Sequence record: NC_031107.2
Length of the DNA: 64,000 nt
Reading direction: 5' to 3' (one strand)
The position numbers were made by a program, and so were the translations under genes. Positions 1 through 4,498 of the stretch are shown here, piece by piece. Within the stretch, counting starts at the first letter, position 1; the number at the start of each line of letters is the position of its first letter. A model generated the notes under the pieces. That model ran no database searches and had not been told where the DNA came from. It saw only the letters and a list, made by a program, of their open reading frames with translations.

Positions 1-504
1 ATGACCACAATCGCCTACGACGGGAAAACCCTCGCGGGTGATTCCCAAACGACCCAAGGCGATATCCGCCTGTCGATGCACGCTGTGAAAATCTTTACAC
101 CGCAACCAGGTGAGTCCTGGGTGGTGAACGGGGAGCGTGCAGCATCGTTCGGGGTAGCCGGATGCCTGCAAGGGAACAACGCACTGCGTGAAGCCTTGTC
201 CAGTTGCATGAAGGGTTACCAGGGCTTAACCGGCAGCACACGATTCCCGAAAGGGATTGTGATTAGCTACCTGGTCGTTACCGAGGGTGGTAACGTTTAC
301 GCCGGTGGTCAATACGAGAACGACGAGATGCCATGGCTGACCAAAGTCACAGCACCCATTGCGGTGGGTAGTGGTTCTGAGTTCGCCATCGGTGCGATGG
401 CCGCAGGTGCATCCGCTGCTGACGCAGTGAGTATTGCGGCACGGTTCGATGTGAACACTGGCGGTGAGATTCGGGAGATTAGTCATGTCTCAAAAACAAA
501 ATAA
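1..504 (+). CDS. HslV/proteasome-beta-like Ntn hydrolase (phage type)
   Basis: N-terminus MTTIAYDG..LAGDSQ (Thr nucleophile after Met removal) and IAVGSGSEFAIGAM match the HslV/Ntn pattern. The ORF starts at base 1, so the upstream context is unseen. Confidence 0.7.
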   Translation: MTTIAYDGKTLAGDSQTTQGDIRLSMHAVKIFTPQPGESWVVNGERAASFGVAGCLQGNNALREALSSCMKGYQGLTGSTRFPKGIVISYLVVTEGGNVYAGGQYENDEMPWLTKVTAPIAVGSGSEFAIGAMAAGASAADAVSIAARFDVNTGGEIREISHVSKTK

Positions 505-1215: not shown

Positions 1216-1644
1216 GTGATGTTTGGATTCTTAAAGAAACGTTCTTCTCGTGCGATGTCTGAAATCAAAAAGTTCGACAAACGCGACCTGGCCGAAGCTG
1301 TGGTAAATGCTGCGTATCTGATTGCGTATGCTGACGGCGAGCTGGAGTCTTCCGAGAAAGCGAAAATCGAACAAGTGCTGCGCGCGAACCCGGTTCTCTC
1401 TAACTTCCAGAGTGAACTTAATGCTATCGCGTCCACGATCATTGCACAGCTGGAAGCCGACATCGACATCGGTCGTCGTGCTGCCCTTCGTCAGATTGCT
1501 GACGTGAAAGGCGACCAGCGTGAGTCCGAAGACGTGCTGGACGTGGCTGTTGCTATCGCCCGCGCGGATGGCGAAATCGAACCTGCCGAAGAAGCGATGC
1601 TGAAACAGATCGCCGAAGCGATGGGTCTGCGTTACGACGCCTAA
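1216..1644 (+). CDS. terB: TerB-family (tellurite-resistance/co-chaperone-like) protein
   Basis: Duplicated TerB-type motifs AYLIAYADGELESSEK and VAVAIARADGEIEPAEEAMLKQIAEAMGL; AAAGGA RBS. Confidence 0.8.
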   Translation: MMFGFLKKRSSRAMSEIKKFDKRDLAEAVVNAAYLIAYADGELESSEKAKIEQVLRANPVLSNFQSELNAIASTIIAQLEADIDIGRRAALRQIADVKGDQRESEDVLDVAVAIARADGEIEPAEEAMLKQIAEAMGLRYDA

Positions 1645-1647
1645 GCC

Positions 1648-1830
1648 ATGAAGCTGAAAACCAAGTTATACATCGCGGCCGCGTTGCTGCTGATGCTGCT
1701 TGGCAACTTCATAGGCCGTGCGTTTACGCTCATTGCCTACGTCGCTGTAATCAGCTTAGTAGCCTACCTGGCATGGCCAGTGATCAAAACCTTTGCCGCT
1801 AAGTCAAAAGCGAAGGCGAAGAAGGTCTGA
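1648..1830 (+). CDS. small two-TM membrane protein
   Basis: 60 aa with two hydrophobic segments and basic termini, located 3 nt after the terB stop. Confidence 0.65.
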   Translation: MKLKTKLYIAAALLLMLLGNFIGRAFTLIAYVAVISLVAYLAWPVIKTFAAKSKAKAKKV

Positions 1831-1892: not shown

Positions 1893-2729
1893 ATGAGAAA
1901 GCTTCTAATCGGTTTAGTAGCAGCCATTAGCTTTAGCGCGTTTGCAGGACAGGACGTGACCATTACCACCGGTCAACAGGGTTTAACGTACAACGCCACG
2001 TACGGCGTTAATCTTGCCAGTGCTCTGAACGAGTTCGGCAACAAGTCCACAGTGGTACCGTCAAAAGGTTCCCTGGACAACCTGGATAAAGTGGCTGCCG
2101 GTACGGCGCAGCTCGGCTTTACACAGGCAGACGCATTCCAGTTCTGGCGCGCACAGCACCCGAACGAAGCTCAGAACGTAGACATCGTTGGCCAGTTGGG
2201 TGACGAGTGTGTCTTCGTGGCTGTGAAGAAAGACGGTAAGGTCGGTGATGAAGCTGACCTCAAAGACGGCATTAAGATTGCTGTCGGTGAACCGGACTCT
2301 GGCTCATACGCCAGTTGGCAATACCTGCAAGGTTTGGTGAAGCAGTATTCGAAAACCGAAACCTATGCGAAAGGCGGCATCCGTTCTCTGTCCAAAGTGG
2401 CCACGGGTGAATACGACGCGTTCATGTGGGTAAGTGCGCCGGGCAAACCTAATAAGTTTCTGGAAGCGGTTAACCAGGAGAGTTCAGGTCTGAAACTCAT
2501 CGACATGAACAACTGGAACGTCAACGACAAACTGCCTAACGGGCAAGCGGTCTACGAGAAGAAGTCCGCGAAAGTTGACAACAGCGCGTGGTTCGGTGGT
2601 GACGTTAAAGTCCCTTGCACCAAAACACTGGTAGTCGCTAATACCGATGCCGGTGACGATCTGCTGGAAGCCGTTTCATCCATCCTCCTGAAAAATGCAC
2701 CACGCATCATGGGGACGGCCAAACAATAG
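1893..2729 (+). CDS. secreted periplasmic-binding-protein fold, TAXI-TRAP receptor-like
   Basis: Signal peptide MRKLLIGLVAAISFSAFA; motifs ITTGQQGLTY, SKGSLDNL..V..G.AQLGFTQAD and IAVGEPDSGS resemble TAXI solute receptors. Confidence 0.7.
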   Translation: MRKLLIGLVAAISFSAFAGQDVTITTGQQGLTYNATYGVNLASALNEFGNKSTVVPSKGSLDNLDKVAAGTAQLGFTQADAFQFWRAQHPNEAQNVDIVGQLGDECVFVAVKKDGKVGDEADLKDGIKIAVGEPDSGSYASWQYLQGLVKQYSKTETYAKGGIRSLSKVATGEYDAFMWVSAPGKPNKFLEAVNQESSGLKLIDMNNWNVNDKLPNGQAVYEKKSAKVDNSAWFGGDVKVPCTKTLVVANTDAGDDLLEAVSSILLKNAPRIMGTAKQ

Positions 2730-3230
2730 CTGTGTGTTAATTGCACTGACGGGGCTGATATCCCTGTTGGAACGGTTTCATCTTTTGGGGTTGGATGAAG
2801 TGAAGAAACGTGGCACGCCAATAAGTCCACGTTAACCGGATTGCACAAAGAACTATCTGCGGGTAGGCAATCCTGCCGTTATGAACTTATCAGGTGACTA
2901 AACATGGAAGAGTTGTTCAGAGCGTTTCTGTACCGTATGGGTACCTGGTTGAAAGACCTCAAGCTCTGGAAGCTCGATACTTATTGGTTATCAGGATGTG
3001 GGACTGAACGCCATAAACCTGTTTTAGGACGAGAGTCCTCAACCCAGGCGACGTCTATTGTAGACGAAGGTCAAGCACCGGCCCATTAAGCCGACTCGCT
3101 GACATAGGCAACCTTCACCCCACAATCTGAATGTAACTGATGGGATTGAGTTCCCAGTGTGAATGAGCAGCAGTGTGCTGCAGTTGGCGCGGTACCTCAT
3201 ACGGCCGGTACGTCACGAAAAGAAAGTAAG
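2730..3230 (+). ncRNA. candidate large structured ncRNA (class unknown)
   Basis: About 500 nt with no convincing CDS and more than 10 consecutive hairpins, including GAAA and GAGA tetraloops; leads directly into the tRNA array. Confidence 0.4.
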
Positions 3231-3233
3231 TAG

Positions 3234-3301
3234 GGTTGGTGCTTGGAGGCGCTAAGACCGGAGTCCTGCTCTGGCTCAGAAGAAGAAGTCCATCAACCCC
3301 A
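3234..3301 (+). ncRNA. candidate tRNA-like RNA lacking a T arm, CCA-ended
   Basis: GTTGGTG/CATCAAC stem + C + CCA, with two internal hairpins. Confidence 0.4.
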
Positions 3302-3307
3302 CTTAAT

Positions 3308-3383
3308 GCGAGTATAGCTCAGCTGGTAGAGCATCTGGTTCCCAACCAGAGGGTCGTGAGTTCGAATCTCATTACTCGCTCCA
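3308..3383 (+). tRNA. trnG: tRNA-Gly (CCC)
   Basis: Acceptor GCGAGTA/TACTCGC, anticodon arm TCTGG-TTCCCAA-CCAGA, encoded CCA. Confidence 0.95.
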
Positions 3384-3491
3384 ATAAATCAATGACTTAT
3401 AGTGATTTCCCCATTTCGCTACAAGACTGCACCAATATATGTAAAACACCCAAGACGTGTGCGAATTCGAAGTTGAGTTCTCAGACGTATT

Positions 3492-3577
3492 GGCGCGGTA
3501 CTCAAGCGGTCAACGAGAGCAGACTGTAAATCTGTTGCCTTCGGGCTTCGTAGGTTCAAATCCTTCCCTCGCCACCA
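3492..3577 (+). tRNA. trnY: tRNA-Tyr (GTA)
   Basis: Class II tRNA with long variable arm, loop CTGTAAA, T loop TTCAAAT, CCA; one acceptor mismatch. Confidence 0.93.
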
Positions 3578-3583
3578 ATATTT

Positions 3584-3659
3584 GTTCCTGTCGTCTAGTG
3601 GTCCAGGACACCTGGTTTTCAACCAGGCAACCGGAGTTCAATTCTCCGCAGGAACGCCA
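3584..3659 (+). tRNA. trnE: tRNA-Glu (TTC)
   Basis: Acceptor GTTCCTG/CAGGAAC, anticodon arm CCTGG-TTTTCAA-CCAGG, CCA. Confidence 0.93.
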
Positions 3660-3664
3660 AACAA

Positions 3665-3810
3665 TGACACTGACTCACGCCGCCTTTGAGCAGCAGAAGA
3701 AGTCTGGCAGCCAATAAAAGCATCCACCGTCTACTGGGCCTGAGGGTCTCGGATAGAGGGTCGCTAAGCGCAGCCGTATAACTCCGTGGGATTCGGAGAA
3801 GTGTCACCCA
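3665..3810 (+). ncRNA. candidate 146-nt RNA with tRNA-like acceptor and T-like arm
   Basis: TGACACT/AGTGTCA + C + CCA; hairpin CTCCG-TGGGATT-CGGAG at the T-arm position; interior fold unclear. Confidence 0.4.
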
Positions 3811-3814
3811 TTAT

Positions 3815-3891: not shown

Positions 3892-3897
3892 AACATC

Positions 3898-4018
3898 AGT
3901 CACTTAATCTCAATCGGATAGAGACAGAACATTACTTCAACAACACTAGGGTGTCCATGGCACGTTGGCGTTGTGTAATGCGATGAGGTTACAGGTTCGA
4001 GTCCTGTAGTGGCTACCA
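3898..4018 (+). ncRNA. tRNA-shaped RNA with ~45-nt extended anticodon arm (121 nt)
   Basis: Acceptor AGTCACT/AGTGGCT + A + CCA, D arm TCTC/GAGA and canonical T arm ACAGG-TTCGAGT-CCTGT; no 7-nt anticodon loop. Confidence 0.65.
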
Positions 4019-4026
4019 TTTTAAAT

Positions 4027-4103
4027 TGTCTCGTAGCTCAGTTGGTTAGAGCGCTCGCCTGATAAGCGGGAGGTCGGTAGTTCAAGTCTACTCGAGACAA
4101 CCA
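4027..4103 (+). tRNA. trnI: tRNA-Ile (GAT)
   Basis: Acceptor TGTCTCG/CGAGACA, loop CTGATAA, CCA. Confidence 0.95.
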
Positions 4104-4110
4104 GCATTAT

Positions 4111-4191
4111 GGGAACATTGTCACCATCAGTGATGACAGGAGTGATGGATTCGTCCCCACTCGACTGGGTGGAAGCCTGGGTGTTCCCCCA
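4111..4191 (+). ncRNA. non-canonical cloverleaf with G-1:C73 and CCA
   Basis: G + GGAACAT/GTGTTCC + C + CCA; three internal arms, the middle one capped by a TTCG tetraloop instead of an anticodon loop. Confidence 0.5.
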
Positions 4192-4197
4192 TTTAGT

Positions 4198-4275
4198 GGT
4201 GTATGTAGTTCAGCTGGTTAGAATACTGGCTTGTGACGTCAGTGGTCGAGAGTTCGAGTCTCTCCATACACCCCA
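4198..4275 (+). tRNA. trnH: tRNA-His (GTG)
   Basis: G-1, acceptor GTGTATG/CATACAC, C73, loop TTGTGAC, CCA. Confidence 0.95.
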
Positions 4276-4377: not shown

Positions 4378-4498
4378 AGTCGCCTAGCTCAAGATTAGAG
4401 CACACCTTACGACCAATACTGACCAACACGCACCGCGGTGCAATAATGGCGGTGGCGTAGTGGTGCGGTTACCGGTTCAAGTCCGGTGGTGACTTCCC
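4378..4498 (+). ncRNA. second tRNA-shaped RNA with extended anticodon arm (121 nt)
   Basis: Acceptor AGTCGCC/GGTGACT, D arm GCTC-AAGATTA-GAGC, T arm ACCGG-TTCAAGT-CCGGT; ends T-CCC; ~45-nt paired insertion in the anticodon arm. Confidence 0.65.

Follow-up and report, generated by a model that had tools for sequence, protein, structure and literature searches.

Does the tract between the gp8 gene and the first tRNA gene of a nine-tRNA run in Erwinia phage vB_EamM_Asesino work as an RNA, as a gene, or as both? The window analyzed here (64,000 nt, NC_031107.2) is the left end of the genome of this phage (KX397364.2, genus Erskinevirus), and its coordinates are identical to those of the record. 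An initial annotation of the window, made from the letters alone, proposed a single non-coding domain of about 500 nt at positions 2730-3230. We found that conservation does extend through this tract and continues beyond it, to position 3302, and that the tract also holds a conserved open reading frame (ORF), gp9, with signs of protein-level selection in its first half, so that a purely non-coding domain no longer describes it. The tract is conserved among related jumbo phages, its helices covary, the folded molecule is the + strand and the ORF evolves under coding constraint. It consists of two structured domains linked by ~100 nt of ordinary coding sequence. The initial annotation is largely right in what it observed and half right in what it concluded. 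In the reading that we favor, and to which we give about an even chance of being right, the module at 2745-3302 is a new, clade-restricted dual-function RNA that heads the tRNA cluster and acts in cis. The element combines two kinds of system already known, the large phage RNAs encoded beside tRNA genes and the dual-function coding RNAs.

Conservation and covariation of the tract

The tract was detected by blastn, whole or in part, in 53 phage records and at one place per genome. The genera concerned are Erskinevirus, Wellingtonvirus, Seoulvirus (the SPN3US group) and Machinavirus, all of them jumbo phages; blastn and motif scans confine the homologs to these four genera and to matching contigs from IMG/VR and metagenomes. 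In 16 of 16 annotated phage records examined, the element precedes the tRNA cluster and shares its strand. Existing annotation of the tract is inconsistent: some records have no gene there, others have one on the + or on the - strand. The single hypothetical ORF that GenBank places within the Asesino tract is gp9.

For comparative analysis, 26 sequences (18 of them clearly distinct) were collected from phages and, by means of a conserved gapped motif, from IMG/VR and metagenome contigs. A structure of 99 pairs, built from domain-wise consensus folds and a scan of column pairs, was counted on this alignment; as controls, every 3' partner was slid by 1-3 columns and 500 shuffles were made. Standard pairs filled 89.7% of the cells, compared with 33-44% in the slid controls. 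Two-sided changes were present in 41 pairs (9-14 when slid) and the covariation score was 0.337 (0.05-0.07 when slid), while none of the 500 shuffles matched the observed percentage paired or the covariation score. RNAalifold, run on nine sequences, returned 89 pairs, 38 of them with compensatory changes. About 450 of the ~560 nt are folded. The 576-nt tract is more stable than its dinucleotide shuffles on both strands (z = -3.5 for + and -4.1 for -); folding z-scores by themselves say little. G-U pairs are frequent in several helices, which identifies the folded molecule as the + strand, the strand of the tRNAs.

All 26 sequences share an open frame of 55-69 codons that starts at an AUG and stops at a UAA in one and the same alignment column. 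Between an invariant Trp codon and this stop, the gp9 frame is the only one open in 26 of 26; the other five frames are open in 0-6 sequences, and no conserved ORF was found on the opposite strand of this stretch in the 26 sequences. The spacing between the Trp codon and the stop varies in whole codons (120, 117 or 114 nt), which means that indels keep the frame intact. Over the first ~33 codons the ratio of nonsynonymous to synonymous substitution rates (dN/dS) is mostly 0.05-0.5, with synonymous change near saturation (0.21/2.10, 0.18/4.0, 0.28/1.81 and 0.11/0.55 in four pairs), and substitutions in this half are distributed 55/14/103 over the three codon positions in the Wellington group. 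Judged from these substitution patterns, the first half of the ORF is under protein-level selection. Over the last ~27 codons both rates are low and dN roughly matches dS (e.g., 0.17/0.05, 0.25/0.27, 0.09/0.05), which argues for constraint on the nucleotides themselves. About 100 nt (~2904-3000) form a coding-only stretch, constrained as protein only, and the flanks are conserved more strongly than this N-terminal half of the ORF. The initial annotation had named a translated ORF, conserved at the protein level without covariation, as one outcome that would speak against a structured RNA; this is not what we found, because covariation is strong in both flanks and in the last third of the ORF.

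Structure of the module and its small gene

All strings quoted in the initial annotation occur where it placed them. Comparison of the 26 sequences bears out its helices AGGAC-GAGA-GTCCT (3026-3039), CGTCTA/TAGACG (3052-3066) and GCAGCA/TGCTGC (3167-3181), and AACGTGG/CCACGTT (2807-2833) is backed by five compensatory positions; comparative support was also obtained for GAAGGT/ACCTTC (3066-3116) with its two inner helices. Other proposals are not supported. The bases of a hairpin drawn at 2859-2879 belong to the covarying helices P4 and Pc (Table 1). GTACC/GGTAC (2930-2944) and GGTT-GAAA-GACC (2947-2958) are present in Asesino and Stratton only and lie in the protein-constrained half of the ORF. 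Closure of the whole domain by pairing of GGGGTTG (2786-2792) with CAACCCC (3294-3300) would draw its 5' arm from the apex of a hairpin absent from many members, and CAACCCC pairs locally instead, with GGGTTGGTG at 3233-3241, at five compensatory positions.

Table 1. Features of the element and its neighbors in the window; the two arms of a helix are joined by "with".
Feature	Position	Strand	Remarks
Conserved element	2745-3302	+	~560 nt; between gp8 TAXI-receptor gene and tRNA-Gly
P1 hairpin	2746-2754 with 2762-2770	+	7-nt loop at 2755-2761
PK1, candidate pseudoknot	2757-2760 with 2888-2891	+	P1-loop GAUA with UAUC; 3' arm just past junction
Pc, junction-closing helix	2771-2776 with 2875-2880	+	AACGGU with GCCGUU; encloses P2, P3 and P4
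P2, clade-variable hairpin	2777-2799	+	UUCAUCU/GGAUGAA; alignments by eye (uncounted) and single-sequence fold
P3	2807-2833; 2808-2814 with 2825-2832	+	Covarying hairpin
P4, long hairpin	2838-2872; 2838-2844 with 2867-2872, 2853-2856 with 2863-2866	+	
gp9 ORF	2904-3089	+	61 aa; stop UAA at 3087-3089
Enclosing helix	3009-3012 with 3047-3050	+	CGCC with GGCG; encloses P6; within ORF
P6	3026-3030 with 3035-3039	+	GAGA tetraloop; within ORF
P7	3053-3057 with 3061-3065	+	Within ORF
P8-P9-P10 stack	3067-3071 with 3111-3115; 3074-3076 with 3098-3100; 3079-3081 with 3091-3093	+	
P11 hairpin	3141-3156	+	UGGGA/UCCCA; 6-nt loop UUGAGU; nearly invariant ACAAUCUGA 5' of stem
PK2, candidate pseudoknot	3147-3151 with 2972-2976	+	P11 loop with ORF codons 23-25
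P12 hairpin	3166-3182; 3167-3171 with 3177-3181	+	Conserved UGUGU loop
P13, variable module	3183-3217	+	One of four unrelated hairpin types per member (alignment, fold)
P14, terminal irregular hairpin	3232-3300; 3233-3241 with 3291-3299, 3242-3244 with 3286-3288, 3252-3263 with 3269-3279	+	
tRNA-Gly(CCC)	3308-3383	+	ARAGORN; first of nine-tRNA run; outside element
gp8, TAXI-family solute receptor	1893-2729	+	5' neighbor of element
60-aa membrane-like ORF	1648-1830		Upstream; homologs annotated TciB-like in ChrisDB and Wellington
TerB-like gene	1219-1644		Upstream of element
HslV-family peptidase homolog	1-504		Upstream of element

The leader (~150 nt, 2746-2891) ends 13 nt 5' of the AUG. It is a conserved, aptamer-like fold directly upstream of the ORF, with covariation in P1, PK1, Pc, P3 and P4. 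Compensatory changes are found at 5 of the 9 pairs of P1, in which three GGG/CCC pairs are invariant. Pairing of the P1 loop in PK1 fills 96% of cells, compared with at most 61% when the 3' partners are slid, and includes two compensatory positions (GC/AU, 14:10; AU/GC, 22:3). We rank PK1 as a candidate because it was found by a post hoc scan; as a candidate it appears better supported than PK2. A small hairpin with a 3' arm that is Shine-Dalgarno-like in some clades shares part of its 5' arm with the 3' arm of PK1. Pc closes a three- or four-way junction. Its count over the 26 sequences is low because two clades are shifted by one column in the alignment; read sequence by sequence, it has 5-7 bp in 26 of 26, with flanking pairs varying among AU, GC, GU, CG and UA.

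Within the junction, P2 corresponds to the TTCATCT/GGATGAA hairpin of the initial annotation. It has comparative support, judged by eye in alignments and uncounted, and is a clade-variable feature, missing in Seoulvirus and Caitlin-type members and replaced by a different hairpin at the same site in other clades. P3 is compensatory at 6 of 8 pairs, with up to five pair types per position, and has a loop of 10 nt plus one bulged U (~13 nt across the family) with the conserved pattern GCAnACCnGUAAGUC. P4 is paired in 99-100% of cells and compensatory at 7 of 10 pairs. Its asymmetric internal loop is conserved, as CACAAAGCAC in most members and as CACAAAGAAC in Asesino, and its apex is variable.

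The gp9 protein is predicted by AlphaFold2 to form a single helix at residues 2-29 (predicted local distance difference test, pLDDT, ~80) followed by a disordered tail; the helix is predicted to be amphipathic, and the protein is basic with a polar tail. A conserved motif, R-x-W-x-(L/F)-x-x-(Y/V)-(W/R)-x-(S/T/A)-G, is found at the helix end, followed by a further R and a C-terminal A-P. The protein belongs to the phage protein family phrog_26199. The Machina homolog matches the family profile with an E-value of 1e-49 over 64/64 positions, and Asesino gp9 matches it with an E-value of 0.011 over residues 15-37; the two proteins are homologous by alignment and synteny. No match to gp9 was found in Pfam. 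A hidden Markov model (HMM) search of 1.84 billion proteins returned only its own family plus repeat-protein noise, and the ESM Atlas returned only small amphipathic-helix look-alikes (lambda CIII, AzuC) with a score of 0.64, below the noise level. Extension of the frame by read-through or frameshifting was considered and rejected, as the in-frame and one shifted frame stop within ~15 codons in Asesino (by eye).

The 3' domain (~300 nt, ~3000-3302) starts within the final third of the ORF and stops 7 nt short of tRNA-Gly. P6 is compensatory at 4 of 5 pairs, and its loops in the Erskine/Wellington clade are of the GNRA type (GAGA, GCAA); elsewhere in the family another hairpin, also GNRA-capped, is found at 3000-3020. 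In alignments read by eye P7 switches from GUCUA/UAGAC to GUCCG/CGGAC and GUCCC/GGGGAC, and its poor count over the 26 sequences is due to misaligned columns. The 5' strand of the P8-P10 stack is made of the final eight codons of the ORF, and the UAA stop is in the apical loop in 26 of 26 sequences. P8 has the variants AAGGU/ACCUU and CAGGC/GCCUG. In P10, four sequences have A-U in place of G-C: the third codon before the stop is altered synonymously from CCG to CCA, and a downstream GCCG-to-GCUG change in the non-coding 3' strand offsets the alteration. We regard this as a telling case of coding and RNA-pairing constraints that appear, from the aligned sequences, to overlap.

The stem of P11 is uninformative for covariation because it is almost invariant. 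Pairing of its loop with the ORF in PK2 fills 98% of cells, compared with at most 48% when slid, with one compensatory position (CG/UA, 14:9) and four wobble changes; PK2 is a weak candidate because comparable spurious helices came from the same post hoc scan. P12 has four compensatory positions (GCAGC/GCUGC, GUGAC/GUCAC, GUGGC/GCCAC, GCGAC/GUCGU). At P13, the Asesino type of hairpin, GGCGCGGTACCTCATACGGCCGGTACG, which includes the palindromes GGTACC and CGGCCG, is nearly identical in SPN3US, pSal-SNUABM-04 and the Wellington-like contigs L087 and L107, while the closer relatives Stratton, Wellington, Machina and Caitlin have three unrelated hairpins instead. Such a distribution looks like module exchange by recombination. 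An A-rich linker connects P13 to P14, the most conserved piece of the element (~70 nt, ~85-92% identical across genera). The outer 13 pairs of P14 fill 98% of cells, with five compensatory positions; its internal loops are purine-rich (GGAGG on one side, AGAAGAAG opposite), and an inner GGUU/AACC variant is found in the Caitlin type. P14 and its A-rich flank suggested a likeness to the L11-binding region of 23S rRNA. Mimicry of rRNA was rejected, since local alignment to E. coli 16S, 23S and 5S rRNA gave z <= 0.9 relative to shuffles, and blastn of all E. coli genomes gave no match to the element.

Relation to known RNAs and setting of the locus

Rfam 15 was searched with the whole window at the gathering score, with 2600-3400 against 4227 families at E <= 10, and with five other members at E <= 1. 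The whole window matched tRNA models only, the region 2600-3400 gave only tRNA and three chance matches, and the five relatives gave none. The cmscan comparison proposed in the initial annotation, with ROOL, GOLLD, introns, RNase P and tmRNA, therefore returned no match; the same holds for both group I and group II introns, 6S, Y RNA-like RNAs and riboswitches. No split gene was seen flanking the element. ARAGORN reported tRNAs only and no tmRNA, and neither end-to-end pairing of the 5'/3' acceptor type nor a T-arm was found by eye or in the helix scan. The lack of an Rfam match, together with abundant covariation, indicates a new RNA family, which supports the initial proposal of a large structured RNA, possibly of a new class, next to phage tRNA genes.

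Searched with a covariance model of the 5' domain, the 64-kb window yielded a single copy, and the HslV-syntenic region of Pseudomonas phage EL, from the next-nearest phage group, yielded no credible match. When 2.9 million viral contigs, 241 million metagenome records and 185,579 species genomes were scanned for motifs of the element, only this clade and chance matches came up. Among the candidates rejected were most matches to the pattern ATGGGATTRAGTTCC in IMG/VR, which were due to chance, and three apparent distant relatives found by nhmmer (L040, L051 and L085), which are located inside a 632-aa ORF. A stricter gapped pattern gave, besides members of the same clade, only chance matches in GC-rich coding DNA (L119 and L120) and in unrelated metagenome-assembled genomes (L137 and L138). 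Full-text literature searches yielded no description of this RNA.

ROOL RNAs are ~580 nt long, and ROOL and GOLLD form homo-oligomeric cages of RNA only. The element resembles ROOL and GOLLD in its size (~560 nt), in being phage-encoded and adjoining a tRNA cluster, and in its many covarying helices and (candidate) pseudoknots. It differs in its conserved, translated-looking ORF, in the ~100 nt without RNA constraint in its middle, in its restriction to four genera of Enterobacterales jumbo phages and in having no match to the Rfam models. ROOL and GOLLD are encoded "often near tRNA islands," with function unknown; they have been described as RNA-only complexes, many GOLLD members exceed 800 nt, and the text of the preprint never mentions an open reading frame (10.1101/2024.12.08.627333). 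With riboswitches and protein-binding leaders the 5' domain shares a compact junction, a candidate loop-to-tail pseudoknot, invariant unpaired nucleotides and a position 13 nt before the start codon; unlike them, it has no Rfam match and a single copy per genome, and no conserved expression platform was found.

Bacterial RNAs that are both coding and structured include tmRNA, SgrS/SgrT, RNAIII/hld and AzuCR/AzuC. As in their single transcripts, a short ORF and conserved structure are found here in one stretch. The likeness to tmRNA extends to a pseudoknot (here the candidate PK1) just 5' of the frame and to a stop in a hairpin loop with further structure after it; however, the frame of the element has a conserved AUG and 55-69 codons, whereas tmRNA has a short tag frame without a start codon. 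The element far exceeds the base-pairing small RNAs in length and has no known target-pairing seed. The stable RNAs species 1 and 2 of phage T4 (rnaC/rnaD) are ~120-140 nt long, have no ORF and are encoded in the tRNA gene region. They are likewise non-tRNA structured RNAs beside phage tRNA genes, probably released by the same processing, but are smaller and without an ORF; this comparison is by description only, not by sequence. In hok mRNA, a small toxin ORF is embedded in a folded mRNA of several hundred nucleotides that is untranslatable until processed. A small ORF in a long, mRNA-sized stretch with a covarying fold is common to hok-type mRNAs and the element, but gp9 is not a membrane peptide and the helix scan showed no end-to-end fold-back helix.

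Upstream of the element the gene set differs by genus, and SPN3US lacks the TAXI gene and retains the RNA module. The N-terminus of the TAXI-family protein is signal-peptide-like. A relative from run X10 is ~95% identical to the window up to position 2740 and ~99.5% identical over 2741-3665, and the contigs of this run break exactly at 2740/2741. This position looks like a recombination boundary between the TAXI gene end and the start of the RNA.

Downstream, the nine-tRNA run begins with tRNA-Gly; tRNA-Trp and tRNA-Cys are further upstream than this run. GenBank lists a 121-nt "tRNA-Ile(aat)" at 4378-4498, and the same feature is present in Stratton (L002, 3054-3173). Neither ARAGORN nor the Rfam tRNA model called this stretch, which may be some other RNA or a tRNA that carries an insertion or intron. 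Unannotated spacers of 95-155 nt separate some tRNA genes (3384-3491, 3660-3814, 3892-4026, 4104-4198), while other neighbors are 4-10 nt apart; the long spacers may contain additional small RNAs or the remains of tRNAs. A weak, sub-threshold YrlA-like match was observed at 3987-4052.

A sigma-70-like site at 3099-3126 was rejected because it is not conserved in relatives, and a terminator scan found none inside the element. In Caitlin/ChrisDB-type phages the small ORF has its start codon overlapped by the motif TATATATG, in place of which the Machina type has a shorter TCTATG; the motif recurs just 3' of the element in Machina-, Caitlin- and Wellington-type phages. Its sites are at ~1255-1265 and ~1690-1700 in the aligned sequence L007 and at equivalent places in L008, L009, L003 and L004; it does not occur in the 64-kb Asesino window. 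The motif is probably a clade-specific phage promoter, in which case transcript starts would differ between genera.

Sequences related to the element are also present in RNA libraries. A pitcher-plant metatranscriptome (X19, 24 Mb) contains one 151-nt contig covering 3076-3226, with a word depth of 19, and nothing else of 2200-3700, a hint that RNA from this part is abundant or stable in nature. A contig covering 3195-3345 from a wastewater metatranscriptome spans P14 and tRNA-Gly; it is weak evidence and possibly derived from DNA.

How the module may act

In the cis-acting reading the module would have two jobs. It would be the messenger for a protein of 55-69 aa with an N-terminal amphipathic helix and a disordered tail, and it would be a folded RNA composed of a pseudoknotted junction leader and a 3' hairpin domain. 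The folded leader may set ribosome access to the small gene, and the small protein may itself bind the leader. Ribosomes that reach the fixed stop would melt P6-P10, and PK2 if it is real; since the 3' structure starts within the ORF, translation and complete folding of the 3' domain would be alternatives. P14 may define and protect the 3' end once the tRNAs are cut off a common transcript. We favor action in cis because the leader abuts the AUG, the 3' fold starts in the ORF, P14 is placed next to the tRNAs and the parts are always together. The presence of one copy per genome is in line with this reading, as is, weakly, the contig that joins P14 to tRNA-Gly.

Several observations weigh against it. 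Folds of 14 members showed no common, conserved hairpin that sequesters the ribosome-binding site, which makes the regulatory step a guess, and the Shine-Dalgarno-like GGUGA of Asesino is not conserved. The column-pair scan that gave PK1 and PK2 also gave about six spurious-looking helices. The RNA-library data are assembled Logan contigs without direction or ends. Loop conservation, GNRA tetraloops and length exceed what is usual for a stability element or a translational operator, and fit a trans-acting RNA or ribonucleoprotein (RNP) equally well; loops conserved to this degree are more typical of RNAs with binding partners or with compact, particle-like folds. Asesino and SPN3US are listed among the phages shown to form a nucleus, inside which transcription takes place while translation takes place outside (PMC13282480). 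This separation excludes any mechanism that depends on coupling between the two processes.

The main rival, a possibility that we take seriously and consider clearly less probable, is that the element is a large folded RNA, or an RNP with its own peptide, that is produced along with the tRNAs and acts in trans on translation, tRNA handling, RNA export from the phage nucleus or host defence. It would be a functional analog of ROOL/GOLLD or of the T4 stable RNAs. The ~560-nt size and the tRNA-island position match ROOL and GOLLD (10.1101/2024.12.08.627333). Near-invariant loops and internal loops, GNRA tetraloops and the pseudoknotted junction point the same way, as does the X19 library, in which only the 3076-3226 segment is represented. 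The basic amphipathic helix, the invariant Trp and Arg and the disordered tail may be compared with those of peptides that bind RNA. However, no Rfam family, ROOL and GOLLD included, is matched in sequence or structure, ~100 nt at the center show constraint as protein only and, apart from the weak PK2, no helix joins the two domains. A more specific form, somewhat doubtful in our estimate, is a new class of large phage RNA, at once messenger and ornate structural RNA, in which the 5' and 3' domains and the basic helical peptide translated from them would make up a self-encoded RNP particle, acting in trans at the tRNA operon of nucleus-forming phages. Its roles might be, for example, tRNA maturation, export, protection or ribosome capture, and it would then be the counterpart of ROOL/GOLLD in phages of Enterobacterales, an assignment that we hold just as tentatively.

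It is rather improbable that the parts are neighbors by chance, i.e., a small gene with a structured leader followed by a separate stable RNA at ~3116-3302 that is processed like T4 species 1 and 2. The N-terminal half of the ORF does separate the structured parts, the ~13-bp stem of P14 near the tRNA would make a processing-resistant 3' end, and the 3076-3226 contig covers the 3' part only. Against such a division, both structured domains and the ORF occur together in 26 of 26 sequences, with none lacking a part; RNA-type constraint begins inside the ORF, at P6-P10, and is continuous with the 3' domain; and the candidate PK2 connects the ORF to P11.

A type I toxin-antitoxin-like locus of the hok/sok style, with a toxic peptide encoded by a folded mRNA that is untranslatable until processed, is very unlikely. 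A small ORF within a long, highly structured mRNA recalls hok, and the look-alikes found in the ESM Atlas could be cited in its favor, weak and below the noise as they are. However, gp9 has no hydrophobic transmembrane stretch, being amphipathic and basic with a polar, disordered tail; there is no Rfam match and no conserved ORF on the opposite strand; and the phage is lytic. Least probable of all is an ordinary coding gene with long untranslated flanks and incidental hairpins, or a DNA element such as an origin or packaging site: the ORF is real and several genome records begin close to this region, but 41 pairs are compensatory, pairing collapses on a one-column slide, the frequent G-U pairs make sense only for a + strand RNA, the flanks are more conserved than the coding N-terminal half, and alignments inspected by eye, with no dedicated repeat or composition scan, showed no obvious repeats or AT-rich tract.

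The findings correct the annotation of about 50 jumbo-phage records, in which the small gene is missing, placed on the wrong strand or called without the RNA. The element is also a natural case of two overlapping constraints, in which the frame and the stop position are kept while the nucleotides evolve as RNA helices. For the large RNAs beside phage tRNA islands, of which ROOL and GOLLD have known structures and functions that are not known, it provides an unrelated further example, in phages that grow in the laboratory. Because hosts, genetics and imaging are in use for Asesino (Erwinia amylovora) and SPN3US (Salmonella), the question of what such an RNA does can be put to the test in these phages. 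In nucleus-forming phages, in which transcription and translation are physically apart, a highly folded RNA produced along with the tRNAs has a bearing on RNA export and processing.

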